The notes under the pieces were generated by a model. That model was not told the origin of the DNA. It ran no database searches and saw only the letters and a program-made list of their open reading frames with translations. A DNA stretch of 64,000 bases. Source: Macrostomum lignano (lineage: Eukaryota). Below, in pieces: positions 1 through 59,853 of the stretch. The stretch is from the NCBI GenBank assembly GCA_002269645.1, contig NIVC01003259.1, forward strand, positions 1 through 64,000. Direction: 5' to 3'. The stretch's first letter is position 1, and each line of letters opens with the position of its first letter. The position numbers and the translations under genes were made by a program.

Positions 1-1047
1 TGGCGAGTTCATCCAGCCACGGCTGCCGTGAAAATGCTGAAGGACAGGAGGAGTTCGCCAGAATTATTGGCGACGGATCGCCACCTGAAGCAGCTGGACG
101 CCGAAACAGCCGAGAGACTGAAGACTGATCCCAATCGATTGACGATCTGGTTTACTACATTGGAAATCGTGCTACTAAAAAAGCTCTGATAATTCATAAC
201 GTAAGTTTTCGTGCTTCCAACCTCGAATCGACCCGAGAGCTACATGGATTTTAAGAACCTGCGTCACGTGCTGACTCTTATGCAGTTCAGTGTGACAGAA
301 ATGGTTAACCTGACAGCTGAGCAGATGCGGGAGGCGTGAGAAACTTTGCCAACGATGACAGCCATGGAGACGCTTGCGTCCTGGCTATCATGTCGCACGG
401 TAGCCTCGGCATTATCTGCGGCACAGACTACAGAAGAGGGGAAAAATTGGGCATCGTTGAAGAGTTTGAAATACTCCAACTGATGTCCAGAGGCGCCGTC
501 AGGGCCAAGCCCAGACTGGTTCTCATTCAAGCCTGTCGGATCGATTTGAGCGAGGCCGTCGCCGGAAAACTGGCGCGAACTCGGAGAGAGTCTGCGCGAT
601 GATGACGGAGATGGCCATCCAGGTGGGCATTCACCAAGGCAATCCTGCCAGCGGATCTGAGCGCCGCCGCCTGAGCAGAGCGGGCTGATCGTGGCCCATT
701 CGACATCGCCTGGGGACTTCGCTTTTCGAAGTAGTTACGGCAGTCGCTTCATTTTAGCCCTGTGCGCAACCTTTTACGAGTTCGCCCATAAAGAGGATCT
801 GGTCTCCATGCTCACCAGGATCAACTTCGCCATGGTTCGCGGATTTAAACAGCCTGAACTGAATGGAGAAGTTCTGTCACTACAGCTGCCATGCTGGACA
901 GTGCAGACGCATAAGAAGTTTTTCCTTGTTAGTACGCAGAGTCTATTTGAAGGGCCGGCAGAAGCGATGGCGGATCGGGTGGATCAACAGCAGCCCAAGT
1001 CAAGCCGAATTCCTCTCTCCGGAGAGGTGTCGGAGAATCACTTATAG
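1..1047 (+). pseudogene. Caspase-family gene, 5'-truncated by the window edge and frameshifted
   Basis: Fragments in shifting frames: ..YYIGNRATKKALIIHNVSF.. / DFKNLRHVLTLMQFSV / DACVLAIMSHGSLG..KPRLVLIQACRID (336-602; SHG His and QACR Cys) / p10-like GLIVAHSTSPGDFAFRSSYGSRFILALC (691-1047). Several frame changes near ~235, ~335 and 600-680. Confidence 0.85.
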
Positions 1048-3796: not shown

Positions 3797-5225
3797 TCAC
3801 CACCTCGCGAAGAATGCCTCCAACTTTTTCCAAACGCTTGCCCGACACTTTCGGCTCCCAGCAGGTGCAGCTGCACTACGATTGGTGTCGCCGATCTCTT
3901 TCATTGGTGTGCCGCTGCCGAGCACAAAAGCACCTCTCGTTTGCAGCAGCCACCACGGCTGCTGAGTCCGCTCATCTTTACAGTCGGACCGATTGAAGCA
4001 GGTCAGGACCATGCAGTTCACCGCAGTTATCACTGATAGGATGTCCGCATCGGCTCCGCATTCATTCAGCACGGAGCACAGGCTCTGCACGAACCAGCTG
4101 CCTTGGAAGCGGTTTCGATAACCGAACTCCTCTGGGGAGGTGCAGTGAGCAATCACCATGTCGGGATAGGGTCTAATCAATCGCTCTGCTGAGCTGCTGG
4201 AATGTGGTTCTTCCAATCGCCTGCACGCCTGAAACACAACAAACTTTGATCTACCCTGAAGCCCACTGCCTTGCTCAGCTGATCAAGAATATCTGCTTCT
4301 TTCACATTCCTTTCGTCGCATCCCAAAATTTTTCCCAGATATCCGTGGGACATGATTGCCAAGGCGCAGGAGCGGCCGTGGTCGTTGGCACCAGCAAAGA
4401 GCTGCACAGTTTGCAAGATTTCAGCTGCCGTGAGGTTCGTTCTGATTGACACTCGAAACCCCAAGCCTGTAAGACATTCCGTCAGCCTCTGACAGTCGTT
4501 CTGGGTGCCAAATCTGATCTCGCCGGATTTGAAGACAATATTCTGAACGATTAGAGCCCTGCTCTGCATAGTGACATTCTGTAGAATAGGTTTCTTTGGG
4601 AACCATTTCTTTCGCATACTGGCTGTGCGGAATAAGTCCTGTTTCATGATGTCGTCACCCCTGATATTTCGGCTCTCTGGCCATTTGGGTGTCAGCTTCC
4701 AACCAGGATTGCTATCGCTGTATTGGTAAATCATTTTTGGCTCTTTTTTCCTAGTACGTAGCTTCTCAAAATTGTAACCAACAATTGGACTGCTTTTAAG
4801 ATTCTTCCTCGGCGTTTTTAGAAATAAGTCAAGGCAGAGATTGATTCGGTCTCGAGTGCCCTGGTAGCAAACCATGCTGAACTTCTCTGGCAGTTCATCC
4901 GGTAAGCGAATCTCAGAGGGCAGCTCATCAGTACCTAGTATCTCAAAGTAGATGAGTAGGGAACTGTTTTCGTGCTTGGTTGCAGTCTCCGACATGCACG
5001 CAATTACATCATCTACGCCGGCTCCGGCCTGGTGCTTCTTAACGATCAGCACAACTGCTAGCGGGCTTTGAGCGGCCGATGAAGTCACAATTTCTCTCAA
5101 AGAAGCGCTAATACCATCGATTCGTTCCGAGATTACTTGAAAGCCAGCAAAATCCAGAAACATTTGATAATCTCGGACTTTGTCGAACAAGCCTTCAGTG
5201 AGAATCAGTGCTACTCCAGGGCGAT
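3797..5225 (-). CDS. Terminal exon of copy 2: degenerate caspase-fold module + caspase with SHG/QACR
   Basis: ORFs 4177..5190 and 3797..4237. RPGVALILT start, EIRFGTQNDCQRL, SCALAIMSHG, FQACRR, GYRNRFQGSWFVQSLC. Confidence 0.9.
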
Positions 5226-5506
5226 CTGAAATTCATTAAGTTTATAGCTTCAAAAATTTTGGGACCTCCAAATCGATTTTTGTCTCAAATTTTTAGTTCA
5301 TACTTACTGTTTTGATCGAGAATGGGACGCGCTTGTCCGATTCTGCTGCTAAGCCTTGCATTGTCTGCAAAGTCGCTAACGGATCGGTTGCAGGTGCAGG
5401 ATTTTCAGGGGTATTTTCGGATTGAGCCTTGCCTGAAATTGAAAATTTTGACAGAAAACTTTATTAAACAATCTGCTTATTTTTTCAAAAACTCAAACAA
5501 ACTTAC

Positions 5507-6856
5507 TTGCGCTTCCGCTCCCTGTGAACTCAGTATTTCCAACATAGAAAAGTTTGGCAGTTTGCACACACCAAGTGGGTGGGGCGTCCTGCAGTCTCTC
5601 GTTGATGATTGAAATCATCGAAACCAAATCCTCGATGGCTGAGTGATTGATGAAAGTCTCGCAGATGGATCCAATCAGCGGTGTCGCATTGTCGCTTTCG
5701 GTGTCCGACGCTTCGGACTGACACCAGACGGTTCCGCTTAGCGGATGGACTCTGACCTCAGGCTTGTCGTTTCTGAACTGCAATCGCATCGCTTCCACTG
5801 CGTCAGGCAGGAATTGGGGAGCGACTTCGGCGCAGCATCCGATGCTTCTGAGGACTTCGGTTGGTACTCCTGAATGATGATCAGCCTCGGCTTACCCTTG
5901 ATAAGCTTTCGAAGGCCATGCTCTTACTGATGTTGCCAATGCAGCTGTTTGCTAGCCAGCCTTCGGAGAGCACAACCAGGCAGCAAGAGTCACCGTGCAA
6001 CTCAGAATCAGCAAAAGTCTTCACGCATTCTTCAAGCTGACTGCAGCTTGACGCGTCTGTTTGAACGTCTTTGACCTCGAACTGGAGCTTATCAAACAGC
6101 CAAAGAAGGCGCCTCCAGTCTGCGTGCATTGACTTGTTTGTCTTGCCGCTCTCTAGTTTGATGTTTAGAACGATCAAGGCGTACGGCTTTTGTATGCGGC
6201 TGTTCAGATATATAAAATCACCGTATAACGCCAGAGTATCCGGGTCAACTCGGTTGGTGAAGGACTCAATGCCGGCTATTTTGATCAGTTCTTGTGAGCT
6301 GCAAGGGTAAAATATTTCGCGCGGGAAGAAACACTTTTCGCTTCTAGGTTTTTTAATGTAAAGTTTAGACGACTGGTCCATATCAAGTGATTCCAGGACG
6401 TCACAAAGGCCAACAGTACGATTTCATTTCAAGTTGCAATCGTTCTTAAATTTATCAAAAAATCGTCCGACTCCATAGGAAGTTCCGAAAGTGTAAGCAA
6501 TGCTAGACTTTCGATAAGGAAAAGCACTGCTGCAGAATTGATTTCGCAGATCCTGATCGATTTGGGTCTCTGTCTCGGACAAGTTGCAGTACAGCAGTAG
6601 CTGATCCACGGATTCGTCAAATTGGTTTAGAAAATCTAGGTAGGCCTTCATGTAGCGCTGTGGCTGCGAAGCGGAGAAAATCACTAGGCAGACAATCTGC
6701 CTGACTGGTGCTCGAGACGGGTCTCGGATTCGGCAAAGTGACTGTTCAGGGCGAGCTTCTCAGTGTAAAAGCCGCAACGAGAGCTCATAAATTCAATGTA
6801 GCTGTCCATCTTTGCTGTAGTCTCATCAGCGAATACTAGCAATAGCCTTTGATGAG
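5507..6856 (-). pseudogene. Internal exon of copy 2: degenerate module + pseudo-caspase (no SHG, no QACxG)
   Basis: ORF pieces 6684..6905, 6424..6684, 5881..6381, 5493..5798 align in order with the 11456..12916 protein (HGDSCCLVVLS, KPRLII, VHPLSG, GKLFY). Confidence 0.85.
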
Positions 6857-7099
6857 CTGCAATTGTAAAAGTTTTGCAAAACTGTATGTTATAGTTGAAG
6901 TGCAAAATACAACTAAAAAAGTCTACTTAATGTGTCTTTGAGAAGTGCTCACCGAATGTTCCCTGCCAGCTGGGAAGCTTCGATACTGCCTGTACATCTT
7001 GAATGATGCCTGTACGTTTTTGTTGCAATTTAGAGCAAAAATTAATCTATAAACAAATATATTTAAAAAGAAACAATTAGATACTTTTTATAATATTTA

Positions 7100-8890: not shown

Positions 8891-9187
8891 GCTAACTAGC
8901 AGTTTATTAATTTAATATTTGTGTAAAAAGTCTTCAAAGTAAAACAAATTTACAAACGCCTATAAACAGGCGTTATCTTTAATTGTCCCAACAGTTGTCA
9001 ATAGTAAATTTTTTATGGTTTGAATGTTAAAATCATATATACCGCTCTCACAGAAATTCATCAGATTTTGAACCGCTAAGAAAAAATGTAAGAATTAAAA
9101 TATTGCCACTGGTAGCTACAATATAAGCAATTAAACCTATTCAGTCACCACAATAGTCAAATTGATAAACTGCCTCTGCGTAGATTA

Positions 9188-10650
9188 TTACAACCGCATT
9201 TTTTGAAGAAGTTCCGTCACCTGAACCCTGCAGTCATTCGTTGTTTGGTTCCTAGCTGAATTGGCTTGATGGCGCGATTCACGACTGCTTTGAGGAGGCT
9301 CATTGACTCGAATCCAAAATTTCTTGCTTGTCTGCACAGACCACCAGGGCAGCTGGCTGATGCCCATATAAAAAGTAGCGTTTTGCACCACATAATTAAC
9401 GATAGGAACCATTGACGCAATGTCGCACGTGTCGGCGAACAGGTCGAGAACAGTGCACAGACACTGGATGAACCGACTGCCTCTGTCTGTCATTCGATAG
9501 CTGCTTTCATTCGGCGAAGTCGAGTGAGCGACGATCATGCCAGGAAAAAACGACAGCTCTGATTTAGGCAATCGACCAGGGTCTAGACAGTTCTGGAAGA
9601 TGACCAATTGCTGCTTTTCACTTGTGCGGTTTCCTTTGGAAATTCGTTTTAGAATTTTACTTTCCTTCGCTGATTCGCCGTCGAAACCAACTACTTCACC
9701 GAGACATCCGTGAGACATAAAAGCAACTACGACTGAGCTGCCGTGTCGTGCGTCACTGCAAAACATGTCTAATTCGCTTTCAATTTCTACTTTGGTGAGA
9801 TTCGACCTGATGCTCACTGAGTAGCCAAGCCTGAGCAAAGTGTCAGCCATTCGCTGGCAGTCGTACTGACTTCCGAACCGAGTAGATAGTTCCTTTTTCT
9901 GGAAGACAACGTTGTGAACGATGAGGGCTACAGCCTTGCACTCTTGAGTATCTAATCCAGGTGCATTCCATTCGCTTCTGAAACTCTCTAATCGGAGAGA
10001 ACCTCTTATTGCTGGTCTCGTCTGCGTGTCGTCACTAACGTCAATTGAAGACAGATTTGGGTGCGATGAACTCTCTTCTATATAAAAGTTTTCAAGCCAA
10101 GTGATTCTCTTCCTCCAGCCTGGGTTTTCGTCATTGACTTTGCAGTGCATTATTCCGTGATGGCAGGAGTGGCAGGAAAAATCTCTACCAACCACAAAGC
10201 TGCCATTGAGAGAGATGTTCTTCCTGGGAGATTCCAGCAGGGAGTCCAGAAATTCAATCACGCCGCACCGATTCCTGCAAACTCTGACAAGGCTAAACTT
10301 CTCGGGTAGCTCCTCTGGCATCTGAGTGTTCGCGAAATTCTCTTCAGACTCGGACACTTCGCAGAAGATAAGCAAAATGCTACTGCTGCACTTTTGAGAC
10401 GATTGCTGTTTAGAAAGTTCATCGACTATTTCTTGCAAGACGTTGTCGTTGCGATGCGTGCGTACAATTAGATAAAGGACAACATTTCCTTCAGTTTCTT
10501 TTGGAAGCCTGATGGCTGTCTTGATTGAGCTCGAATTGCCATCCGTGTAATCGAAGAGCACTTTGAAGGCTGCATACTCCAGAAACATCTGATAGTTTCT
10601 GGCCCCATCATACTGTCCTTCGGTGAGAATCATCGCAAATCCTGTTCGAG
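9188..10650 (-). CDS. Terminal exon of copy 1: degenerate caspase-fold module + caspase with SHG and QNC
   Basis: ORF 9188..10633: KAVALIVHNVVF..STRFGSQYDCQRM..VVVAFMSHGCLG..VIFQNCLD..GMIVAHSTSP..SYR..GSRFIQCLC. Confidence 0.92.
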
Positions 10651-13415
10651 CTGAAATACGAAAAAGTGCAAGTACAACTGAGCTTTGCTGAGATTAGCGA
10701 GTTTTATTGGCTTATACAGCACAGTGTTCTTTAATACATGAATCTAATAATGTTTAAACTCAAGCGTATCTTTCTGAAATACATGTACTTATCAGAAGGT
10801 TTTTAGATGAAATAATTCTTGATAGGATAAAAATGTTTGGACATCGCAGCAAAACGGAACAGATACCAGTATAATTAGAAGTGAGTAGTCTTGCAAAGAT
10901 GTTGCACATAGCTTTATATGGCTATAACGCATGAATCGGATCTCTACGTCGTAAGAGGTGTTTCTCGATAATTTAATATGCCACTTACCAATTCTGGCGC
11001 TTTCAGGTTCTTTAGATTTCTTCTCTAGACTTTGTTTAGGCTCTTTAGATTTCTTCTGTAGACTTTGTTGCGAAACCTCCTGACCGGTAGCTAAAAGCAA
11101 AATAGTGCAAATGATTATGCAATAATGATTTCTGCATAGTTGTAACTTTTCAATTTCGACTTTGGCAAAAGTGACCAATTTTGACAACAACAAGGAGAGA
11201 CTGAAGACGACTAGTGAAGTACCTCGACATAAATGTAAACACGGCCAAAGCAGTCAATCACAGATTTGTCATTCAAGATTGTATTGTTTAAAGGCAACTA
11301 GAAGGAACCGTTAGGTCAAAATTTACACCACCAGTGTCGCACACTAACACCAAAAAATGTTGGCGGTGGCACAAGCAGTCTGAGCTACAGAACTACAATG
11401 ATATTGATCACAAAGAATTTTAAGTCACTTTGACAGTAACAGTGACAGTCATAATTTATCGTGTTGCCAAAACTGAAATCACTTTTGCCAAAGTTCGAAT
11501 TGAAAAGTATACATGCATTGAGCTAAAAAAAGTTCTCTTACCCTGGATTCCGTCTGTTCCCATGAGATAAAAGAGCTTGCCAGTCTGAATAAACCACTTG
11601 GGCACAGATTCATCTAGTCGTTTGTGCTCATTAATTATGGTAATCATAGAGGCCACGTCCTCTGTGTGACCATACTGTCTGAAAGTTTCGCACAGTGTCT
11701 GAATAAAAGCGCTGCCCTCTGCTCTTGTCACATCGCTACTAACTGATCGACCGAACACCATGCCGCTGTGTGGATGAACCTTGATGGTTGAATCATGATT
11801 GCGAAAATAGGCCTGCAAACCGTCCACAGCATCTTCAATGATCTCATAAGTATTGCTGCTGAAACCATCAGTAACAGAGTCTGTCTGCAGTGTTGTGACA
11901 TCCCACTCGTGCAGAATAAAGAGTCGGGGCTTGGCCTCGAGCTTTTCGCCAATAGCCAAGCTTTTGTACAAATTCATGACAGTAGAGCTGCTCAGCTGCT
12001 GCTGCGTCTGGGACAGCACGACAAGGATGCAGGAGTCACCGTGTTCAGTATCTTCTGAAAAAAGCTCGATCCTTCTTTTCAAGGCGTCATTGGAGCGGGT
12101 TTGCACGTCCGTTACAATGTAGCCAAGATTTTTTAGCATACGCATAACTCTGCTGCGGTCAACTTGCAGAGCAGAGTATAGAGAGTCTCCTCGGTCATAT
12201 TTGATGATGACCAACGCTCGAGGCTTTTTCAGATTGCGCCGATTCGGATAGATTATTGAGGCATTCTCGCGCATCCAATCAGTCGGTTTGTCTTGAGCAG
12301 TCTGCTCTGATGCTGCTGGTAAGGCATCAACTTCATCAAGGTTGCTCTTGGGTTCCCTGATAAATTTGAATATGTCGCGCAGGAAATCTCCACCGAGCTT
12401 TCCTTCTCTATGATACAGAGAAAGGGACTCGTAAGCGAGTGGTAGCTTCAATGCCGTCTCCAGGATAGAAAATATACTTTTAGTCTCCCAACTGCACCTG
12501 CAGTCATCCAGGAAGCTTCTATAGAAGCCCTGTACGCTTTTAGTTTCCTTAGCCACGATGTAAGCGATAGTTGTACACTTGTATTTAAAATTCGCATTCG
12601 AAAATTCGTTTGCAAGTTTCGTGTCATCCAGGCTTTCTTCACCAGCGCGACAAAATAATAAACATCTGTTTTGGCAGTTGGGAAATGTACCCATTGTCAT
12701 GAAATCTAGGACGTCCTTCATGAAAGCATTGCCAGCTATCACGACTACAATTAGCTGCTGGACCTCGGAATTGTTCACGGAGTCGGATAGACACGAGCCC
12801 AGTTTGCTTTCATACTGCTGTTCCAGGCTCCTCTTTACGTTAAAACTGCACTCTTTTAGAAAGTCGGCGTACTCATCTGTCACTGACTCATTGCGAGCGT
12901 CGAAGAACAGAGCCAATCTTCGGGAACCTTAAATATCATTATTTGGCATAGGGTTTTTCATAGTTGGCTATTCAAGAGACCAGCATGTTTTCTTTGCTAT
13001 TGTAGCTTAGTTCAGTTCTATAACTCTAGTAGTAAGGGTCGCCGCTCTGAGCAAAGCAGAAATAGCTACAGGATTCTACTTGAAACTACCAGTCTCAACA
13101 GTGTAAAATCTGTACATCGCGTATTTTAGTTCGTTTGCAAGGAAAAATTTTAGCAAAACTTGATTGTAAAACTTACATAGTTCATCTTCAAATTTGAAAT
13201 CATCGGCAGAACTACTTTCAAGAAGAGCTGAAAGCAATAATAAAGACAACAGTTTGGTAGTGTTAACCTTCCTTTCGTAAAGTTCAGAAGAATGAGCTAA
13301 AAGTTCGACAGGTAAAAACTCTTCTATGGGAATTTAAACTACATTCATCATTCAAAAAAGACCTACTTGACGGTCTTAAGCGTATAATTTTTTTCACGTC
13401 GGTGACCTCGCTCAT
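9188..13415 (-). CDS. Multi-caspase-domain gene, copy 1, intact (predicted exons 13415-13367, 13227-13177, 12927-11542, 11090-10989, 10650-9188; ~1016 aa)
   Basis: All junctions are phase-1 GT-AG (donors GTAGGT 13366, GTAAGT 13176, GTAAGA 11541, GTAAGT 10988; acceptors TTTCAG/TTTAAG/TTTTAG/TTTCAG). Internal exon lengths 51, 1386 and 102 nt are multiples of 3, and the joined 3051 nt is open. The first exon is the least certain. Confidence 0.75.
11542..12927 (-). CDS. Internal exon of copy 1: degenerate module + pseudo-caspase (SHG->SQT, QACRG->HEWDV)
   Basis: ORF 11456..12916: KPRALVII, LKNLGYIV, HGDSCILVVLSQ, KPRLFILHEW, GSAFIQTLCETF, GKLFYL. Confidence 0.9.
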
Positions 13416-15180: not shown

Positions 15181-16678
15181 CAGGGAGGTCCAGAAAGGTC
15201 TCCCGGACTAGAAGCAGAGTTTTCTCTGCACTGTATTGATGGATTGGGCTGAAACTTGACCTGCTTAAACTTTATTCTGAAAATATTTTTTGTCTAAAAA
15301 TCTTAGCAATTGCTAAAAAATCATGAAGTTACAGCAGTTTTTTGTTAAATCAGTAGGGTTTTAGCACAATCTGCTATGCAACTGTTAGTCAGTGCTCCAC
15401 ATGATGACCTTTGTTATCGATACAAGTCTGCAGGCGCTTCTTAAAGCTATTAAGGCTGTTGACACCAAAATCCACTGGCATATCATGCATTAGCTGCGTT
15501 TTCCGTGCCTTAGCTCATCCAGGCTGTCCACTGGCTGTCGGTAGACGTTGTCCTTCACCCATCCCCAGACAAAGAAGTCCTTAGGGTTGAGATCAGGACT
15601 GGGTGCAAGCCAATGAATTGTCTCATAGCGTCCGATTTCGCGCTCCTCAAAGTTGTGCTGAATCCATTCACGCACATTAAGCCCGATGTGGGCTGGAGCA
15701 CCATCCTGCATCAGCCACAAGTCACCAGCAACAAATGCCTCGTAATTCTGAACCACAGGCAGAAACTTTGGATCCAGCATTTCCACGTACCGCTCAGAAT
15801 TCACCGTAACATTTGCACCCTGCGCATCCTCACAGAAGAAAGGTCCAACAATGCCGTGGGACCAAATTCCAGCCCAGCATGAGACGCGTGGTCTGTGAAG
15901 GGGCATCTGGATAGAGAAATCTGGGTTTTCAATGGCCCAATACCGCGAGTTCCAGGTGTTATTGTGGCCATGCAGGGAGAAATGAGCCTCATCAGAGAAA
16001 ATGATGTTGGTTAACATTTCAGGATCACTGTCAAACATCTCCAGCATATCAGTTGCGAATAGCACTCGCGCCTCATTGCCGGCCTCATTCATTGCCTGTT
16101 GACGGCGCATGCGATAGGGGTGAAAGCCACTCTTATCCAGCACACGAAGGATGGACTGATGGCTAACATTCAGCTCCCGACTCGCACGACGTACTGACTG
16201 TTGTGGTCGCTCCTTGAAGTATTGAACAACTTGTTCCACATTCTCAGCAGAACGAGCAGTCCGTGGACGCCCAGAAATTGGTCGTCGATCCAAACCAAAC
16301 TCACAGGCCACCTTAAGTGCATCTTTGATGGTCTTAGCATCTGGAGGGCGTTGTTTGGCAGCCAAATTGAACTCACGACGCCATCGCCGCTGGACCAACA
16401 GCGGACTCTTCAATTCATCCAGCCAGGATGCCATTTTAAATCTTTCAACTGGCGTGTAAGTCGTGTAAGTCTGGAATGAAATGTGCTCATCAGTAAGTGA
16501 AAACGGTGTTTTTTAGAAAAACTGCTGTAACTTCGTGATTTTTTTAGCAATTGCTAAGATTTTTAGACAAAAATCATATTCAGAATAAAGTTTGAGCAGG
16601 TCAAGTTTCAGCCCAATCCATCAATCCAGTGCAGAGAAAACTCTGTTTGTAATCTGGGAGACCTTCCTGGATCACCTG
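15181..16678 (-). mobile_element. Tc1/mariner DNA transposon, DD41D (rosa/Visitor-type), ~165-bp TIRs, TA TSD
   Basis: TIRs CAGGGAGGTCCAGAAAGGTCTCCC.. / ..GGGAGACCTTCCTGGATCACCTG with flanking TA at 15179-80 and 16679-80. The transposase (15490..16434) has FSDEAHF, QDGAPAH and SPDLNPKD with 41 residues between the 2nd and 3rd Asp. Confidence 0.93.
15390..16434 (-). pseudogene. DD41D transposase with a C-terminal frameshift
   Basis: The main ORF stops at 15490. The typical C-terminus ..FKKRLQTCIDNKGHHVEH* continues in another frame to ~15390. Confidence 0.85.
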
Positions 16679-24117: not shown

Positions 24118-25068
24118 ATGTCTACCACACTGCATAGAGATAAACGCAAAAACTTTCGTCGAGCGCCGATTGTGGTGCGGGGCATGGATGACCAGTGGGA
24201 ACTGGACCTGGTTGAAATGCTGCCGTTCGCCAAGTACAATGGCGGCGTACGATATATTCTATGCTGCATTGATGTGCTCAGCAAGTTTGCCTGGGCTCAG
24301 CCAGTGCGCCGCAAGACAGCCGATGAGGTTGCAGCCGGATTCGAAGCGATCCTAAATCGAGCTCACTCTCGATGCCCACGAGCAGTTCGGACCGACCGTG
24401 GAAAAGAGTTTTGCAACACCCAGTTCCGAGCCCTCTGCGTAAACCACAAAATTCATGCATTCACATCAACTAGTGACCAGAAATGCGCAGTCATTGAGAG
24501 ATGGAACCGCACACTGAAATCCCGAATGTGGCGGTACTTCCGTCACAAGTCAACATTAACCTGGACCGATGTGCTTCAACCCTTAGCAAAGGCATACAAC
24601 CAGAGTATTCATCGGAGTATTCAAAGCCGACCAGTTGATGTCGACAAGTCAAACGAGATGGAAATTTGGCACCGGCTTTACTATGGGAAGCTTCCTGAGA
24701 CTCGTGAAAAGGTCTCCAGACCAAAGTTCAAGGCAGGAATGATGGTGCGAATCTCTCTTCGCAATCCGACCAACCCATTCACCAAGGGATACACAAGGGG
24801 ATGGAGTGAGGAAGTATTTGAAGTCAAGTCCCTCCACCCCAAGCATTATCCATACATGTACACTCTGATCGATGCCCGAGGAGAAGAGTTGGAAGGCAAG
24901 TTTTACGAGCCGGAAATGCAGCAGGTGACTGGAAACAAGAAGCTGTGGATCATCGACAAGGTTCTCAACATTAAGAAGCTGAAGAGTGGAAAGATTCGGT
25001 ATTTGGTTCAGTGGCGCGATTTAGAAAAACCCAGTTGGATTGACGAAAAAGACTTAAGAAAAATATGA
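24118..25068 (+). CDS. Polinton retroviral-type (rve) integrase with a C-terminal chromodomain-like segment
   Basis: DQWELDLVEM, CCIDVLSKFAW, VRTDRGKEF, AVIERWNRTLK (DDE); C-terminal IDKVLNIKK..RYLVQWRD..PSWI. Confidence 0.95.
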   Translation: MSTTLHRDKRKNFRRAPIVVRGMDDQWELDLVEMLPFAKYNGGVRYILCCIDVLSKFAWAQPVRRKTADEVAAGFEAILNRAHSRCPRAVRTDRGKEFCNTQFRALCVNHKIHAFTSTSDQKCAVIERWNRTLKSRMWRYFRHKSTLTWTDVLQPLAKAYNQSIHRSIQSRPVDVDKSNEMEIWHRLYYGKLPETREKVSRPKFKAGMMVRISLRNPTNPFTKGYTRGWSEEVFEVKSLHPKHYPYMYTLIDARGEELEGKFYEPEMQQVTGNKKLWIIDKVLNIKKLKSGKIRYLVQWRDLEKPSWIDEKDLRKI

Positions 25069-25847
25069 AAAGGCAAAGATTTCAAGTAATGTCCGGCCCC
25101 GATGATGACCCGGCCAACTTTACTGCTGAGCTGCTGCATCCTGTGCTGCTGGAATCTGCTTTGGATTATGAGTTGGCTCTGCTTGGAATCAGTTTTATCA
25201 ACTGCATCTACACCATCCCTCATCCATTGTCGCTATATTATCAGCTTGAGGGTTCAATGCAATGTGCTGAAATTCCGGCTGGCAGCTACAATGACTTGAA
25301 TGAGCTGATTGATGCAGTAAATGCCCTACTGATTGTGAAAGATTTTGATGAGTCTGGAATTGGCGAAACACCTATAAATGTGCATCTAATTAAATTTACC
25401 CTTGATTCAGTTAGCCATCATGTATACTATCAAATGGCTGGGATCTGTGAGAGATTTATCTTTCCAGAAAACAGCCAGCTGGGGAAAATCTTTGGTGCTG
25501 CGCAGACAACCTATAGCGAGCAGGCAGGATGCTTTGAACGACCTGGCATGAACCCGGCCTGGAATACGGATTTGCTGCTTGTTGAGTGCGATCAGATTAG
25601 CCCGCGCTGTATTGGAAATCAGTTTACTCCAGCACTGCAGACTTTGAATATTGGTTGTCTTTTGCAGGGTCACCGGTCGGAACTCATCTATAAGAATAAG
25701 CTGTTCTTCCCAATAGCAGCAAACCACCGCTTAACGCACATGCAAATACGGCTACGACTGATCAACTGTATCGAATCTATTCGATTACTCTTTGGACCCA
25801 CAGTCTTGACTTTTGAGCTACGTGAGTCATGGACATTCGACAAGTGA
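25065..25847 (+). CDS. Polinton minor capsid protein (penton-like)
   Basis: NFTAELLHPVLL..YELALLGISF..IPAGSYNDLNELID..LLVECDQISPRCIGNQFTPAL. Position between integrase and MCP; ATGA overlap with the integrase stop. Confidence 0.75.
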   Translation: MKRQRFQVMSGPDDDPANFTAELLHPVLLESALDYELALLGISFINCIYTIPHPLSLYYQLEGSMQCAEIPAGSYNDLNELIDAVNALLIVKDFDESGIGETPINVHLIKFTLDSVSHHVYYQMAGICERFIFPENSQLGKIFGAAQTTYSEQAGCFERPGMNPAWNTDLLLVECDQISPRCIGNQFTPALQTLNIGCLLQGHRSELIYKNKLFFPIAANHRLTHMQIRLRLINCIESIRLLFGPTVLTFELRESWTFDK

Positions 25848-25859
25848 CCGAGTTTTATC

Positions 25860-26092
25860 GAGGCAGTTGCTTCAAACTTTCTCATGGGCACGGATATCCC
25901 ACATCGCTGCTATCTCGACTGCCCCCTGAGACTCATGAAAATGCAGTTCTCCTTTCCCTCATACCACCTCCATCGCAGAAAAAACATAAGAAGACGCCAA
26001 AAATCAAACCAAAGAAGAGCAAGCCAGTGCCCACAAAAAAGCGCAAGATATCATACAAAACAGTCAACCGAGTGCTCGATTCACTCTCATAA
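25860..26092 (+). pseudogene. Small Lys-rich Polinton ORF remnant (possible core/DNA-binding protein)
   Basis: ..HGHGYP..PSQKKHKKTPKIKPKKSKPVPTKKRKISYK..; no clear ATG. Confidence 0.35.
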
Positions 26093-27363
26093 TGTATCGG
26101 ACAAATCCACGGCTCAACCTGTTTGAGCCAAAGAAGCATGAAATTGGAGTGGATAGGTCTCACTTCATGGACTTTCGTCCCATCGGCAGTCTCACGACTC
26201 CTGATGCACCGATTGAATTCGACTGCCACGCCTCCTCTGAGGACTACACCGATCTGCACGCCACAGTGCTGCAAGTCACTTGCCGGATAACTCGTGTGAT
26301 AAACAATGCAGAGCTGACTAATGAAGATGATGCCCATGTCGGACTATCGAATCTCCCGCTTGCCAGCCTGTTTCGTGATGTCACTGTAAAACTCAACCAG
26401 AGGGTTGTGGGTAGTGGGGACCAGCTCTACCCATATCGAGCAATGCTTCAAGTGCTGACCAGCAGCAATGCCAACCTGCTTCAAGAACTGGCGGCCGCAG
26501 GTTATTATCCAGACACCGCTGGAGAGAGTGACACCATTGGGGAGCAAAATCATGGATTCACAAATCGTGCGAGATTGCATGAGGCTTCTGCTGTTGTGCA
26601 ATATGCCGGCCCGTTGTTTTCAGACATTTTCTCAATCCGGCAGAATCTGCTAAACCAAATCAGCCTGCAGGTCAAACTGACCCGGCATTGCAGCGCTTTT
26701 TCATTGATGGTACCCAATAATGGAGTTCAATATCGTATTGAAGTCGACAATGCTATTCTGCTTTTGAGGCGTCTCCGAGTAAACCCAACAGTGGCTCTCG
26801 CACATGAACAGGGGCTCTCACAGCGTAATGCTCTCTACCACTTTGATAGAAGAGAGCTTCAGACATTCACATTTTCCGTTGGGACAAGAAACAAGAGTCT
26901 CGATTCAATCACGCATGGTCAGCTGCCAAAATTTGTGCTCCTTGGAATGGTCAGCCAGACAGCTTTCAATGGATCTCTGCACCACAACCCGTTTTGGTTC
27001 CAAGCATTTGGATTGAATAGTTTAAGCCTGTTTGTCAATGGAGAGCCAATTACTGGGCAGCCCATAGAACCACAGGAGCAGCACTCATCCGAATTTTTGC
27101 AGTTTGCCCGCAGTCTCGGTGGAAACTATTGCATGGGCTTTGATGAATTTCGAAATAGTGCCTATTTGCTTGCGTTTGACCTTAGTCCAAGTGGCGATGA
27201 AGTAGGCAGCTGGTTTGGTCATAGGCAGGGTCAACTACGACTGGATATTCGCTTTTCCAACGCTCTCGCACAGCCAGTCACACTCATCTGCTTGTGCGTG
27301 TATGATTCATGCATGGAAATCACTAAAGAGAGAGATGTGCTGCTGGATTATCGCAGAGCATGA
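26092..27363 (+). CDS. Polinton major capsid protein (double jelly-roll), type 1
   Basis: LNLFEPK..DFRPIGSL..PIEFD..DYTDLHATVLQV..LASLFRDVTVKLNQ..YPYRAMLQVL..GQLPKFVLLGMV..NGSLHHNPF..LLAFDLSP..GQLRLDIRF..LLDY. Intact 423 aa. Confidence 0.92.
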   Translation: MYRTNPRLNLFEPKKHEIGVDRSHFMDFRPIGSLTTPDAPIEFDCHASSEDYTDLHATVLQVTCRITRVINNAELTNEDDAHVGLSNLPLASLFRDVTVKLNQRVVGSGDQLYPYRAMLQVLTSSNANLLQELAAAGYYPDTAGESDTIGEQNHGFTNRARLHEASAVVQYAGPLFSDIFSIRQNLLNQISLQVKLTRHCSAFSLMVPNNGVQYRIEVDNAILLLRRLRVNPTVALAHEQGLSQRNALYHFDRRELQTFTFSVGTRNKSLDSITHGQLPKFVLLGMVSQTAFNGSLHHNPFWFQAFGLNSLSLFVNGEPITGQPIEPQEQHSSEFLQFARSLGGNYCMGFDEFRNSAYLLAFDLSPSGDEVGSWFGHRQGQLRLDIRFSNALAQPVTLICLCVYDSCMEITKERDVLLDYRRA

Positions 27364-31576: not shown

Positions 31577-34500
31577 TGTTGTGTTCTAATTAACACAGAG
31601 AGTTTCTTTGATTGAAGCTTTCTCGGCGAGACACAAATCTCGCTCACAATATATTTATAGAGGTGAAACTCCTACTTGCACGTTGCATTGCAAATCGATA
31701 CGCAATCACCTACACATTCTAGTCTGAGTACAGTATACGCCCACGCATTCAATAAGGTCAATAGTTAATTGTCAGTGGTCAGTTCATTGCGCAAGCATTG
31801 TCAATCACAACATACTCCCCCCTTCCGGAAGAGGATAACGCGCCGGTTGCCGTCGAGCTCGAGTTGACCTTCGAAGTTCAGGTGGAGGTGGCGGCTCGCC
31901 CGTCCGTGGGGGCGGAGCCGGCGGCAGCGGCAAATCGAACAAGTCGTCCTCTTGGTCGGCCGCGCCGTTGTCAGCCGGTGGGCTGTTGCACTTAACCAGC
32001 CGACTCGCTTGCCACTTTGTACCGTCGGACAGCACGAAGGTGTTGCGCCCTGCTCGGGAGGCGATCTTTAGCGGTTCCTTCAGTCAGGTCGCCAGCTTGT
32101 GCGCTCGGTGCGGCGTCTGTCGCCAGACCTAATCTCCGGCCTGGAGCGTAGAGTCACGAGCCCGCCTTCGCTTGTTGGTGTTGGCTTGCCTCTCAGTGAT
32201 AGCGTGGCGCAGATCGCTGTCGTCCCGCTGTTGCACTGGAGTTGGCCTGAGCAGCTGCAGTCCGGACCGCAGCTTGCGCCCGATCATCAGCTCGGCTGGA
32301 GTCAGCCCGATGAGAGCGTGCTGACTGGTCCTGTAGGTCTTGAGCACCAGGTCGATGGCGTCCTCGAAATTCGCTCCCGCCCTCAGGTTCGCTGCCAGGC
32401 CCTCCTTCAGACTCCGGTTGAATCGCTCGACTCCGCCGTTGCCTTGCGGGTAGTACCGGCTCACTCGGCTGTGCTTGATGCCCTCAGCTCGCAGGAACTC
32501 TTCGAACTCGTCGCTGACGAACTGGGGTCCGTTGTCGCTGATCAGCATCTTTGGGACTCCCCACCGGCCGAATAGCTTCCGAAGCGTCTTGATGATGTTG
32601 GCAGAGGTGACGGTTTCCATGGCTGCAATCTCCGGCCACTTGCTGTACAGGTCGTGGATCACCAGTAGGAACCGCTGGTGTCGAGGAGCCGCGGCAACCT
32701 CGCCGAAGATGTCGATCTCGACCTTGTCCCACGGTCCATCTGGCCACTCGATTGGTGTCACGATCGTCTGTTAAGGCTTGCCGGACTTCTCCGCCAGAGT
32801 GCAGGCCGTGCAGTTCTTGACGTAGTCCTCCACCTGCCGGTCAATTCCAGGAAACCAGACCGTGTCGCGGCACCGCTGCTTTGACCGAACGACGCCCGGA
32901 TGCCCTTCGTGTGCCTCCTCGATGACTTGAAGTCGCAGGCTCGTCGGGATGATCGCGCGTTCACAACGGCCGAGGCACTGACCGTTGTTCCAGCAGAACA
33001 GCTCGTCCCGGACGTTGAAGTACGGCTTCAGAGAGCTGTCCACATTCGTCGGCCAGCCGCCCGAGATGTACTGCAAAACCGCCTGCAGCACTTCGTCCTC
33101 CTTGGTCGCCGTTGACAGTGCGTCTGCCGTCAGCGTTGTTTTCGAGTCGACGACTGCGTAGACGTAGCCCTCCTCGTCGGTCTCCTCGGCTGGAACGCGC
33201 TCCGTCGTGGCCCATCTGGACAGCATGTCCGCGCACTTGTTGTCAGCGACAGGGATGTGCTCAAACCGGACGTCTTAGCCGCGAAGTCTCTCGACCCATC
33301 GATGAATGCGAAGAGGCCTGTGCCCCATGCCTTTCGAGTCGAGCAGAGTTGTCAGGGCCTTGTGGTCGGTGCGCAGCGTTACTCGTCTGCCGTATAGATA
33401 GTAGTGCCAGCGTTCGATGCTCCATACACAGGCCAGGGCTTCTTGCTCTCCGGCTGAGTATCGCTTTTCCGCTGGGCTGAGTGCTCTCGATGCGAACGCA
33501 ATTGGCACCTCTTTTCCGTTTTGTACTTAGCTGAGCACTGCCCCCAGTCCGTCTAGACTTGCATCGCAGGTGACGTACGTCTCAGCTTGGCAGTCAAAAT
33601 GAGCTAACACTGGGCTGCTGGTTACGGCTGACTCGAGTGTACGGAAGGCTGTACGTTCTCGCTCACCCCAGTGCCAGTCCGCGTCCTTTTTGAGCAGTTG
33701 TCTCAGAGGCTCGGCAATTGCTGAGTAATGCGGTATGAACTTGTGCAAAAAGTTCACTGCCCCGAGAAACGATTGAATTTTCGCGACCGTTGATGGCTCA
33801 GGAATTCTTAGAATTGCGTCGACGTTGGACTTGGTCGGTTTGAGGCCGTCTGCAGAGATGACCAATCCGAAGAAATCCACGCTCGCCTGCCGGAATTTGC
33901 ACTTCTCTCGATTGAGTGTGAAGCCTTCGCGATGAATCCGCCCTAGGACTTCTCGGAGGTTCTTGTCGTGCTCAGTCTCGTCCTTGCCGTGCACCAGGAT
34001 GTCGTCCACGATGTTGATGGCGCCAGGAGCTCCTCGAAGCACCGTCTGCAGGGCTCGCTGGAAGGCAGCTCCGGAGCTGGATAGCCCGAATGGCACCACG
34101 GTGAACTGATACAGGCCGGCATCGGTGATGAAGCACGTCAGTCCTCGAGAGTCTGGATGCAGCGGAATCTGCTGGTAGCCTTGACGCAGGTCCAGCTTGC
34201 TGAAGCACTTCGAGCCGTTGATGCTGGACGATAGGTCCTCGATTGACGGTACCGGATAGCGGTCCGCGATCACCGCCTTGTTGACCTGCCGCAGATCTAC
34301 CCAGAGACGAACCTTGTTGGACTCCTTCTTGCGCGTCACGACAACGTTGCTAACCCACTCGGACGCGTCGACCTTCTCAATGATGCCCTGTTGCTCCATC
34401 CGGCTGATCTCTGAAGTCACTTCGTCTTTCAGGCCGATCGGCAGCTTCCGCATTGGCTGAGACACAGGCTTGACCGAGGCGTCGATCTTTGTCCGGTGAA

Positions 34501-35935
34501 TGAAGCTCTTGGACCGGCCCAGACCGTCCAAGATTCCGGGGAAGTCGCGCTCGATCGTAGTCTCGCTGATGCTCATCACTCTGTTGTCACCTTGGAAGAT
34601 TTTGAATCCGAGGGCCTGAAACAGGTCACGGCCCAGGATGTTCGCTCCTTTGTCGGCGACGTAAAATGTGGCTTCTGTCCTGATGCCGTTGAACGTCACT
34701 GGAAGCTCGACCTTGCCGATGGTCTTGATCACAGATCCACCGTATGCCTCCAGTTTTGTGCTCGTCGGAAGCAGCGGGTGCCTAGCGAATTACTTCTTGA
34801 ACGTCTCCGTGTTTAGCAACGAAACGGCAGCACCGCAGTCGATTTGCAGTCGAATCAGCTGTCCGTCCAGACGGCATTCGCAGAATAAGCTGTCTGTGCT
34901 CTTGTTGTTCACGGCCAGGACCATCAGGCTGGACTCTGCAGGCTCTTTGGTGTCGATCGCAGAGACCGCTTTCATGCGGCACATTTTCGCGAAATGGTTC
35001 GTCTTGCCGCATCGTCTGCATTTCTGGCCCATCGCCTTGCATTCGCCCTTGTGTCCGTGGTTGCCTCCGCATCGAGTGCACTTTGGACCTGCTGCTGCGG
35101 TCTTCTCATGGCGAGCAGCTGGCTTCGGCTTCTTGCTCAGCGCCTTCACGTGGAGCTCTGGGCCGCTGACCTGCTTGGCATTTCTGATGGCTGCTTCGAT
35201 TCGCTCAGCCTTCTTGATGGCGTCATCTAGCGTCAGATCGTCCTCCTCCATCAGGAGTCTTTCCCTAATGCGAGGTACGCAGGTTTTCTCCACAAGTTGG
35301 TCTCGAATCATTTTGTCGTGAAAGGTGCCAAAGTTGCAGTTTATTGCCAGTTCTCTCAGGGCCATCACGTAGTCTCCGATGCTCTCGCCGTCGTGCTGGG
35401 CTCGCTGCCGAAAGGCAAAGCGCTCTGCTATGACGCTTCTTGACGAGCTGAAAATCGCCTTCAGTGCCTTTTTGGTCTCCTGAAGCGACTTGCTTGCATC
35501 GACGTTTGCAGCTCGGCGGCGTCCTTCCTCACCAAACAGATCTAAGAGGATCGCATTTTTCCGACTCTCTGATGCCTCTTCGAGAGCTCCAGCTACCAGG
35601 AAGTTCTCAAATGACTTGATCCACCTTGCCCATGGCACAGGAGGTTCGCCTGGTACTGGTTGAAACTCCGCTGGGTACGGGAGTCCGCTCGTCGCCAATT
35701 GTTGTGTCCTAATTAACACAGAGAGTTTCTTTGATTGAAGCTTTCTCGGCGAGACACAAATCTCGCTCACAATATATTTATAGAGGTGAAACTCCTACTT
35801 GCACGTTGCATTGCAAATCGATACGCAATCACCTACACATTCTAGTCTGAGTACAGTATACGCCCACGCATTCAATAAGGTCAATAGTTAATTGTCAGTG
35901 GTCAGTTCATTGCGCAAGCATTGTCAATCACAACA
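31577..35935 (-). mobile_element. Ty3/Gypsy LTR retrotransposon, full length, nonsense-disrupted
   Basis: 236-bp LTRs 31577-31812 and 35700-35935 (TG..CA; one mismatch seen). PBS TGGCGACGAG next to the 5' LTR; PPT AAGGGGGGAGTA at 31813-24. Order gag(CCHC)-PR(IDCGA)-RT(IVDD)-RH-IN(HHCC, DDE). Flanks GTTGG/GTTTG (5-bp TSD with one mismatch). Confidence 0.97.
31805..35700 (-). pseudogene. Single-frame gag-pol with six in-frame stops
   Basis: Stops at 34790, 33527, 33275, 32771, 32129, 32084 all lie in one frame (differences are multiples of 3); no frameshifts. Confidence 0.92.
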
Positions 35936-42530: not shown

Positions 42531-43868
42531 GTGCCAGCTAGTTTCCGCTTCATTTCTTATTTTATTTTATTTTTAGTTAAAAAAATTAACGAACCATTGA
42601 CACCAGTTTTCTACAAGATTAACAAGCCTATTTTGAGTGATGATAGCACAATCAAAGCGACTCAGGTAAGAGTTCCCAGTCAGGAACTTCAGAATGAAAC
42701 TAATCTTGGTCCTGGTCAAACACTGACATTCATTTACAATGGATGTTCGTCTCTGGTTAGTGTGCACAGTCTTAAGAGCGGCTTCCATATGAAATTTCAA
42801 TTCAAGACAAAAGGTGGTGCGGATGCGGCTCGTGCTAACGTTGACAAGCATGATGCGGATGTGGCTCTGATCAGTAACTTTTGGGCGTACATGTTCAAGG
42901 AGTTTAGTGTATCGAATGGGAGCACTGAGTTGGAGCGAATCGCCAACTTTGGAATTGTCTATGACGCTCATTGTTTGATCGAGAATCCTGATTTTATTCA
43001 GTTGGGAAGTGGTGCGGGTTTTATTGCAGATGAAAAAGGAGACATCAATGACAGTGGCTATAAAAAGAGGAAGAAGAGATACAACTATGCATTGCAAGGT
43101 GCTGATGATGCTGCTAAGAACCCGCTGTATCGGTCTGTTGATTTATTTGTACCACTAAGATTCATGAGTGGATTCTGTAATGCATTTAATCGATTGACTA
43201 GTAACTTTAGCTACACATTTAGACTGACTAGAGATGATCGCAGTAGAGTGTTGTGGACTGGGGCGGACCACACTGGGATGGCTGTGAAGCTAACCGGAAT
43301 CGAGCTGTATTTGGAAGTCATTGAGCCAAAGACTGCACTAAAAGCGGATTATCTTAAGGCAATAGAGAAGGACATTGATGTTGCATACACGGCCTACATG
43401 TGTCGAGATGAGCGAAACGAAACTAGAACAAACATCTGCATTAAAGAGGGATCATGCAGCAATCCAAGGTATATCATTATTAACATGAGAAACCCAAATA
43501 GCATTATACGCTACATGCATGGAGACGTGCGGTCCATTCAGCATGAAATCAATGATCATCTTTACCCTGCGCTGCCACAAAATGGAGATTTCAGTCAGAA
43601 CAAGATTAGCAAATTTTACAGCGAGTTGGTCGACTTGGCTGTGAAAGAGAACAATGGAATTGCTATCACTGCTCTTCAATATGGAACTCTATATCCGATG
43701 TTTGGCGCTGATGTGTCTGCCAGACAAATGCCTACTGATAACAGCCCTGTGAATATCGTGACTAACATTGAGAGGACTGTCGCAACACCCGTGGACCTGT
43801 ACATTATCTATGCATTTGAGAGGAAGGTGAAGCTTAACATGATCAACAATTCATCCAGTAAAGTTTAA
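42531..43868 (+). CDS. Polinton major capsid protein, type 2 (start codon uncertain)
   Basis: DDSTIKAT..NLGPGQTLTF..VALISNFWAYMFKEFSVSNGSTELE..FVPLRFMSGFC..NPRYIII..DFSQNKISKFYSE..LYPMFGADVS..ERKVKLN. Long open frame; no ATG near the 5' end. Confidence 0.8.
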   Translation: MPASFRFISYFILFLVKKINEPLTPVFYKINKPILSDDSTIKATQVRVPSQELQNETNLGPGQTLTFIYNGCSSLVSVHSLKSGFHMKFQFKTKGGADAARANVDKHDADVALISNFWAYMFKEFSVSNGSTELERIANFGIVYDAHCLIENPDFIQLGSGAGFIADEKGDINDSGYKKRKKRYNYALQGADDAAKNPLYRSVDLFVPLRFMSGFCNAFNRLTSNFSYTFRLTRDDRSRVLWTGADHTGMAVKLTGIELYLEVIEPKTALKADYLKAIEKDIDVAYTAYMCRDERNETRTNICIKEGSCSNPRYIIINMRNPNSIIRYMHGDVRSIQHEINDHLYPALPQNGDFSQNKISKFYSELVDLAVKENNGIAITALQYGTLYPMFGADVSARQMPTDNSPVNIVTNIERTVATPVDLYIIYAFERKVKLNMINNSSSKV

Positions 43869-56546: not shown

Positions 56547-57255
56547 GTCAGCGAGCGGCAGCAGCAGCAGCCTCCTAGCATCAGCGAGCAGCAGCAGCAG
56601 CCTCCAGGCATCGGCGAGCAGCAACAGCAGCCTCTTAGCATCAGCGAGCAGCAGCAGCAGCCTCCTAGCATCAGCGAGCAGCAGCAGCAGCCTCCAGGCA
56701 TCGGCGAGCAGCAACAGCAGCCTCTTAGCATCAGCGAGCAGCAGCAGCAGCCTCTTAGCATCAGCGAGCAGCAACAGCAGCCTCTTAGCATCAGCGAGCA
56801 GCAACAGCAGCCTCTTAGCATCAGCGAGCAGCAGCAGCAGCCTCTTAGCATCAGCGAGCAGCAGCAGCAGCCTCCAGGCATCGGCGAGCAGCAGCAGCAG
56901 CCTCCCAGCATCAGCAAGCAGCAACAGCAGCCTCTTAGCATCAGCGAGCAGCAGCAGCAGCCTCCAGGCATCGGCGAGCAGCCTCCTAGCATCAGCGAGC
57001 AGCAACAGCAGCCTCTTAGCATCAGCGAGCAGCAGCAGCAGCCTCCAGGCATCGGCGAGCAGCCTCCTAGCATCAGCGAGCAGCAGCAGCAGCCTCCAGG
57101 CATCGGCGAGCAGCCTCCTAGCATCAGCGAGCAGCAGCAGCAGCCTCCAGGCATCGGCGAGCAGCAACAGCAGCCTCCCAGCATCAGCAAGCAGCAACAG
57201 CAGCCTCTTAGCATCTGCGAGCAGCAGCAGCAGCCTCCAGGCATCGGCGAGCAGC
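56547..57255 (+). repeat. 30-bp (and 21-bp variant) minisatellite GCATC(A/G)GCGAGCAGCA(G/A)CAGCAGCCTC..
   Basis: Direct reading; ~24 units. Confidence 0.97.

Positions 57256-59764: not shown

Positions 59765-59849
<85 letters not shown>
59765..59849. repeat. (GCA)n/(AGC)n tract, poly-Ser in the pPolB frame
   Basis: Direct reading. Confidence 0.97.
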
Positions 59850-59850
<1 letters not shown>

Positions 59851-59853
59851 CAT

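Follow-up and report, generated by a model that had tools for sequence, protein, structure and literature searches.

The 64,000-nucleotide (nt) stretch of the Macrostomum lignano genome analysed here (assembly GCA_002269645.1, contig NIVC01003259.1, positions 1 to 64,000 of the forward strand; hereafter the window) carries on its minus strand, between positions 13415 and 9188, a gene that is predicted to encode a single polypeptide of 1016 amino acids (aa) with four caspase-fold modules in a row, only the last of which would be an active protease. Two minus-strand open reading frames (ORFs), 9188-10633 (481 aa) and 11456-12916 (486 aa), each contain a match to the Pfam family Peptidase_C14 (1.2e-29 and 4e-11, respectively). 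An earlier note on this DNA, made from the letters alone, had proposed that the two ORFs are joined via a 102-nt linker exon and extended by two upstream micro-exons that supply an ATG. Both ORFs are found where it had placed them, and so are the splice signals G/GTAAGA at 11541, TTTTAG/ at 11091, G/GTAAGT at 10988 and TTTCAG/ at 10651 (the slash marks the exon border). Joining 13415-13367, 13227-13177, 12927-11542, 11090-10989 and 10650-9188 gives an open frame of 1016 aa, and the same protein exists as UniProt M. lignano model P0001 ('CASPASE_P20 domain-containing protein', 1016 aa), in which 3 of 1016 residues differ and all junctions are identical. The exons, modules and motifs are, in the order of the chain:

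13367-13415, minus strand: exon 1, 49 nt, with the ATG and the first 16 codons; donor CAA/GTAGGT; N-terminus as in UniProt model P0001
13177-13227, minus strand: exon 2, a 51-nt micro-exon between TTTCAG/ and /GTAAGT; exon and both splice sites are kept in the second genomic copy, L001
11542-12927, minus strand: exon 3, 1386 nt, carrying modules 1 and 2
12925-12227, minus strand: module 1, cryptic caspase-like, aa 35-267, in exon 3
12326-12337, minus strand: DEVD tetrapeptide, aa 231-234, read from the sequence, in the linker of low confidence that joins modules 1 and 2
12226-11543, minus strand: module 2, pseudo-caspase, aa 268-495, in exon 3; Peptidase_C14 match at 4e-11
10989-11090, minus strand: exon 4, the 102-nt linker exon rich in Lys, Glu and Ser, phase 1 at both ends
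9188-10650, minus strand: exon 5, 1463 nt including the stop codon, carrying modules 3 and 4, followed by a tail of 31 aa
aa 530-766, minus strand: module 3, cryptic caspase-like, in exon 5; AlphaFold2 predicted template modelling score (pTM) 0.75, Foldseek matches mostly caspases
9940-9284, minus strand: module 4, predicted active caspase, aa 767-985, in exon 5; Peptidase_C14 match at 1.2e-29
9710-9712, minus strand: codon of the catalytic His843 of module 4, in an SHG motif aligned to SHG of caspase-3
9587-9589, minus strand: codon of the catalytic Cys884 of module 4, in QNCLD in place of QACRG, aligned to QACRG of caspase-3

Judged from conserved splice sites and from gene models, it is quite probable that the five exons yield one chain; exact-protein look-ups aimed at transcripts or contigs had no entry for P0001 or the 481-aa ORF. 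In L001, a second copy with about 90% identity (GCA_002269645.1, NIVC01000896.1, Mlig_3_7 assembly), both large frames are open, every splice site is retained, and where exon lengths deviate (by -6 nt and -33 nt) the difference is divisible by three. Exon 1 of L001 has a conserved ATG, a 6-nt in-frame length difference and a conserved donor, which is the better one of the two copies. Within the linker exon of the window gene lies a 33-nt tandem duplication (QSLQKKSKEPK / QSLEKKSKEPE), and the L001 linker exon (about 9095-9165) has one of these repeat units fewer, i.e. 69 nt vs 102 nt, being still in frame and flanked by both splice sites. In model P0002 exon 4 is absent with the frame preserved, which is compatible with exon skipping; the single repeat in L001 and the missing exon in P0002 suggest that exon 4 is a variable or skippable spacer. 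Moreover, in the 34%-identical paralogue P0006 (1017 aa), the type of the neighbouring gene 2, intron positions and phases match around a linker exon of its own that is unrelated in sequence.

Among the alternatives, the one that survives best, an unlikely one in our view, is that the locus encodes two proteins, namely a standalone pseudo-caspase (modules 1 and 2), which would terminate either at 11456 or within the linker, and a separate enzyme (modules 3 and 4), whose translation would begin with the ATG at 10633 once a spliced leader has been trans-spliced to the 10650 acceptor. Both products would then act in trans like c-FLIP and caspase-8, and the fused model would be an annotation merge. 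An independent mRNA of the second half is possible because the exon 5 acceptor is followed after 15 nt by an ATG and trans-splicing is widespread in M. lignano, where polycistronic precursors make up about 7% of assembled transcripts (PMC5730564). Further points that weigh against one chain are the RNA-based NCBI model of the homeologous copy, P0004, which covers the last 318 aa only, and the relative P0010, which is built as a single unit. Gene models of tandem caspases also call for caution: among 151 proteins retrieved by homologue search and from clusters, 18 have at least two caspase-domain matches. Other taxa contribute 15 of these, some of which are probably merged models; at least one resembles a merged tandem gene, namely that of Gryllus bimaculatus, with 577 aa vs 287-316 aa in its sister species. 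Against two independent proteins speaks the linker exon, whose frame and phase are preserved in either copy across the 33-nt indel, with splice sites retained, and so do the intron positions and phases shared with a 34%-identical paralogue. The NCBI Mlig_3_7 annotation models P0006 and P0005 (838 aa) each cross both halves; according to the genome paper, the assembly behind them was guided by RNA-seq, with cuts at trans-splice and poly(A) sites that had been mapped by experiment (PMC5730564). Finally, P0002 fuses the halves even without the linker exon.

The second module of each large exon is a caspase domain that can be recognized unambiguously by Pfam and by alignment, as the earlier note had held. 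Module 4 matches PF00656 at 1.2e-29 with 104 bits (cut-off 21.4), its best sequence matches in the PDB are caspase-3 (5e-12), and its residues Arg787, His843, Gln882, Cys884 and Arg915 align to Arg64, His121, Gln161, Cys163 and Arg207 of caspase-3. Thus, the His-Cys dyad is at the canonical positions and the Asp-binding S1 pocket (Arg787/Gln882/Arg915) is complete. The pentapeptide around the catalytic Cys is QNCLD, with a Leu following the Cys where close paralogues have an Arg (QNCRD or QACR). As the last module alone holds both the dyad and the S1 pocket, we predict that the chain contains one protease, this module, with specificity for Asp. In module 2 (PF00656 at 4e-11) Gln340 (12010-12008) occupies the place of the catalytic His and Trp375 (11905-11903) that of the Cys, and the Arg residues of the S1 pocket are lost. 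The dyad of module 2 is likewise lost in P0005, P0006 and P0007, with different replacement residues, and module 2 would therefore have been dead already in their common ancestor and been kept since.

Modules 1 and 3 are more difficult to assign. Seven segments of this type from the family can be aligned and display a β-α periodicity with five invariant positions, and hhalign shows that module 1 is homologous to module 3 (probability 96.8%, P 2.2e-10, 145 columns). Compared with a profile of 55 caspase sequences, module 3 is matched with a probability of 89.7% (P 1.9e-6), collinear from β1 to β4, and its match to the family's own active domain is just as good (P 4.6e-6); module 1 on its own gave no hhalign match to the caspase profile. 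As the comparison of TIR with caspases, run as a control, yielded a spurious P of 4e-5 in an alignment of 27 columns, the hhalign P-values were not used alone, and shuffle nulls as well as head-to-head comparisons were applied. The score of module 3 against the caspase profile, 45.0, lies far above a block-shuffle null with a mean of 19.1 and a maximum of 29.5 (z 11.9). When the segment profile was run against the PDB sequences, the best natural matches were Spodoptera caspase-1, in register and with an E-value (0.64) that is not significant, and no TIR domain was listed. Direct hmmsearch of the segments with caspase and TIR hidden Markov models was uninformative, with all scores below 10 bits.

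The earlier note had suggested that structure prediction be used to examine the cryptic segments, and here the two differ. The AlphaFold2 model of module 3 (predicted local distance difference test (pLDDT) 72, pTM 0.75) has the elements b1-a1-b2-a2-b3-a3-b4-long loop-b5-a4-a5-b6 and, as read from secondary-structure strings, this order, including the sixth strand, is compatible with the caspase fold. In the Foldseek search of the PDB, the caspase-8:c-FLIP complex ranks first (3h11_B, 4.6e-4), followed by drICE (template modelling (TM) score 0.54), MALT1, Sf-caspase-1 and CED-3, and about 38 of the 50 best matches are caspases or paracaspase, with no TIR domain in the top 50. The model of module 1 (pLDDT 67.5) gives a mixed picture, i.e. 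drICE is the best match (4e-3) with TM scores of at most 0.45, CheY-like and flavodoxin-like folds are interleaved, and one TIR domain appears at rank 27. Several observations weigh against caspase folds in these modules: neither has a significant Pfam match (whole proteins, isolated segments and consensus), the hhalign control shows how easily low P-values can arise, the AlphaFold2 alignments comprise only 7 sequences, both models are of moderate confidence (pLDDT 67-72), and the Foldseek matches reach an E-value of 4.6e-4 at best and TM scores of 0.54 or less. Nevertheless, based on profile comparison and predicted structure, module 3 is best, and rather probably, explained as a degenerate caspase fold, and, by homology to module 3, the same reading is extended to module 1. 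The caspase topology that the earlier note had seen in both segments is thus supported for module 3 by hhalign, AlphaFold2 and Foldseek, whereas module 1 agrees weakly by its own model and is tied to the fold via module 3.

Both modules are likely to be catalytically dead. The caspase L1 loop, which carries the S1 arginine, is deleted (a 12-column gap in the hhalign alignment), and the substrate loops of p10 cannot be recognized. The earlier note had gone further in stating that the N-terminal segments have no His or Cys, which does not hold. Cys126 and Cys626 are located in an 'LLIFC' strand near the end of β4, two residues before the canonical site, a Cys being present in six of the seven segments; His595 immediately follows β3 of module 3, and segments of the module 3 type retain such a His. 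A conserved His/Cys dyad does not exist in modules 1 and 3, since the paralogue P0006 lacks the β4 Cys. Of the proposed order dead-dead-linker-dead-active, the dead module 2 and the catalytically complete module 4 therefore stand, and the dead state of modules 1 and 3 is likely.

The main rival for the identity of modules 1 and 3, which we regard as quite unlikely, is that they are TIR-like or generic flavodoxin-like α/β domains, so that the chain would be TIR-pseudocaspase-TIR-caspase and would link a protease with an adaptor for signalling or of the NADase type. The first five strands follow the same order in caspase and flavodoxin-like folds, and topology alone can thus not separate the two. 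What speaks for TIR-like domains, and hence counts against degenerate caspases, is that UniProt calls the family member P0008 (A0A1I8GM93) 'TIR domain-containing protein' and that the segment consensus matches Pfam TIR_2 with an E-value of 0.0055 and 17.6 bits (cut-off 28), with no Peptidase_C14 match listed for the consensus. The mixed Foldseek list of module 1 with its caspases, CheY, flavodoxin folds and a TIR domain would suit such a view, too. We used a profile of six TIR sequences, which was validated in the PDB by finding L6, RPS4, TLR2, TcpB, SARM1 and MyD88 at 1e-40 to 1e-62. Module 3 scores 27.4 against it (probability 15%, z 6.0), which is above the shuffle null, but falls behind its score against the caspase profile (45.0, probability 90%, z 11.9); module 1 gave no hhalign match to the six-sequence TIR profile. 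Moreover, about three-quarters of the Foldseek matches of module 3 are caspases or paracaspase, its predicted long β4-β5 loop and sixth strand suit caspases, and the PDB sequence matches of the segment profile favour caspases in the same way. No family member matches any Pfam TIR model at E ≤ 10; it is solely the artificial consensus that does so, and below threshold. The TIR name of P0008 probably derives from a weak profile match on a cryptic caspase-like segment and may be a mis-annotation.

The four-module protein belongs to a family that an exhaustive phmmer search with the full protein detected in M. lignano only. In this search, matches outside M. lignano were confined to ordinary caspase domains and no relative of modules 1 and 3 was found, and a word-indexed homologue search with module 3 alone returned just one protein, from M. 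lignano. P0010 (580 aa) consists of one cryptic module and an active caspase with QACR, and P0007 contains a cryptic, a dead and an active module, the second cryptic module being absent. This suggests that a cryptic module paired with an active caspase, as in P0010, is the basic unit and that P0007 is an intermediate. The persistence of the four-module layout and of open frames in paralogues that are 34-43% identical argues for a function of the N-terminal modules.

At the locus itself, the gene is part of a small caspase cluster that also comprises gene 2, downstream on the same strand, and a third caspase gene on the plus strand. Gene 2 (3797-7004, minus strand) is a 34%-identical tandem paralogue with the four modules and the linker exon of the P0006 type. 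It contains an in-frame TGA at 6426-6424, where P0006 has a Trp, and at least five 1-nt frameshifts (near 6725, 5910, 5819, 5330, which is in the linker exon, and 4270). As the adjacent 3-kb gene described above has no such breaks, this copy of gene 2 is probably a decaying pseudogene. The third gene (336-1047, plus strand) is of the P0010 type and lies tail-to-tail with gene 2; its C-terminal part is present, as the start of the window cuts the gene.

Selective constraint differs along the chain. Constraint is strongest on module 4, where comparison with L001 gives a ratio of non-synonymous to synonymous substitution rates (Ka/Ks) of 0.21. The values for exon 3 (0.63), module 2 (0.64), module 1 core (0.82) and module 3 core (0.70), all based on few substitutions, indicate weak constraint on the dead half between these two recent copies and weigh against a role of the dead modules. 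They may reflect redundancy after a recent genome duplication in M. lignano, and they also leave room for N-terminal modules that are weakly functional. In the extreme, modules 1 to 3 would be functionless relics of internal duplication that drift near-neutrally, and the protein would be an ordinary caspase with a long inert prodomain. The Ka/Ks contrast between modules 1-2 (0.63-0.82) and module 4 would fit such a scenario, and the frameshifts and the TGA in gene 2 show, in comparison with P0006, that members of the family do decay. We consider it very unlikely, however, given that both frames of 460-490 codons are open in both copies, that all four modules are kept in paralogues of 34-43% identity and that the pseudo-active site of module 2 varies while the fold signal stays; the number of non-synonymous changes in exon 3 (66.5 observed vs about 74 expected under neutrality) is borderline. 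A prokaryotic origin or chance ORFs were rejected, given the eukaryotic source of the window (M. lignano) and the strong domain matches in the ORFs.

Caspase domains are active only when they are paired via strand β6. Considering this requirement, the dead modules might be built-in pairing partners, and we propose, with a probability of roughly 0.6, that the 1016-aa chain consists of two copies of a unit made of a degenerate caspase-fold module and a caspase domain, separated by a skippable, charged linker, and that the dead modules serve as partners in cis. They would hold the active domain in a pseudo-heterodimer similar to that of c-FLIP and caspase-8, or mask it. No match to CARD, DED or DD was obtained at E ≤ 10 in P0001 or its paralogues, in line with the earlier note, which had seen neither CARD nor DED, and pairing in cis may thus replace the recruitment via CARD or DED that other initiator caspases use. 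As the linkers between the modules are long and have low predicted confidence, such pairing is sterically plausible. Both the pairing in cis and its regulatory effect are proposed here by analogy. The tetrapeptide DEVD (aa 231-234) in the disordered linker, a canonical effector-caspase motif that precedes an Ala, is found unchanged in L001. In paralogues other xxxD motifs are located about 10 residues upstream of a conserved 'IYPN'; that DEVD is a processing site is speculation.

A more far-reaching reading, which we put forward tentatively and hold to be doubtful as a whole, is that the unit constitutes a self-contained, platform-independent activation device of independent flatworm origin, in which the dead modules furnish, in cis, the partner that dimerization requires. 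Instead of recruitment to the apoptosome or the death-inducing signalling complex, activity would then be controlled by cleavage of a linker, e.g. at the conserved DEVD that lies between module 1 and module 2, or by exon 4 being skipped. If this was true, it would be the third independent origin of caspase-fold prodomains, next to caspase-X and caspase-16, and the first in which such a unit was duplicated to give four modules.

The combination of dead and active caspase domains in one chain, of which the earlier note knew no described example, has been published for coral caspase-X (PMC4715348) and for mammalian caspase-16 (PMC12198278). In caspase-X of Acropora millepora (AmCaspase Xa-d; Moya et al. 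2016) an N-terminal domain without His and Cys precedes an active caspase, intramolecular β6 pairing was modelled on c-FLIP/procaspase-8, and deletion of the dead domain raised cell killing; for A. digitifera one prediction with four caspase domains is listed (PMC4715348). The flatworm protein likewise has a dead N-terminal and an active C-terminal caspase domain in one chain and, with at least two C14 domains, the N-terminal one without His and Cys and the C-terminal one intact, it is of the tandem inactive/active type, the chain itself being given by gene models and splice sites. Caspase-X, however, has two recognizable C14 domains and no cryptic modules, whereas the flatworm protein is predicted to have four modules, two of which are invisible to Pfam. 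Its origin is likely to be independent of coral caspase-X, since phmmer outside M. lignano gave nothing but ordinary caspase-domain matches.

In caspase-16 (Eckhart et al. 2025) the prodomain arose from duplicated caspase-domain exons, its catalytic site is lost, it is predicted to adopt a caspase fold, and the active domain is C-terminal (PMC12198278). This matches the unit of cryptic module and caspase in the flatworm protein and in P0010. Mammalian caspase-16 comprises one dead and one active module, whereas the flatworm chain has this unit twice, with a dead second domain in the first of the two. The complex of c-FLIP(L) and procaspase-8 (PDB 3H11), from which the best Foldseek match of module 3 (3h11_B) derives, also combines a pseudo-caspase with an active caspase via β6, but as separate polypeptides that are joined by DED domains on FADD, whereas in the flatworm protein no DED or CARD was detected and any partners would share one covalent chain.

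For M. lignano, only a caspase with a kinase prodomain is named in a survey of caspases of Lophotrochozoa (PMC11463336), and a literature search on the Mlig gene identifiers found no paper citing them; the gene model is public in UniProt and uncharacterized. What appears to be new is the four-module chain and the recognition of two Pfam-invisible segments as caspase-like, a lineage-specific extension of known dead/active tandem caspases.

Much of the remaining window is filled with ORFs of transposable elements (15490-16434, 24118-27363, 33527-34732, 54510-57300 and 59744-63385), including a Tc3-type transposase with a helix-turn-helix, ORFs for integrase, reverse transcriptase and protease of long terminal repeat (LTR) retrotransposons, and a non-LTR ORF of 1213 aa (endonuclease, reverse transcriptase and RNase H). 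The GC content of these blocks is 50-61% vs about 41% around the caspase genes. At 1519-2340 a long, perfect microsatellite-like array encodes (SIYL)n in one frame, resulting in a spurious ORF of 273 aa. An ORF of 445 aa on the plus strand (42531-43868) has a sub-threshold Pfam match to a double jelly-roll-like domain (E 1.8e-5, 24.6 bits, cut-off 27) and could represent a capsid-like gene from a viral or Maverick/Polinton-type element.

How the requirement for dimerization is met defines each cell-death pathway. In Platyhelminths FADD has been reported missing and the prodomains of initiator caspases reshuffled (PMC11463336). The transgenesis that is feasible in M. lignano (PMC5730564) makes it feasible to test the role of the dead modules in the animal. 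Prodomains that are invisible to Pfam can be relics of catalytic domains, and censuses based on domain matches may thus under-count architectures of this kind. A lineage-specific family in which one active domain is permanently attached to as many as three dead caspase-like partners would constitute a natural experiment in the regulation by pseudo-enzymes in cis, in parallel to c-FLIP/caspase-8, coral caspase-X and caspase-16.

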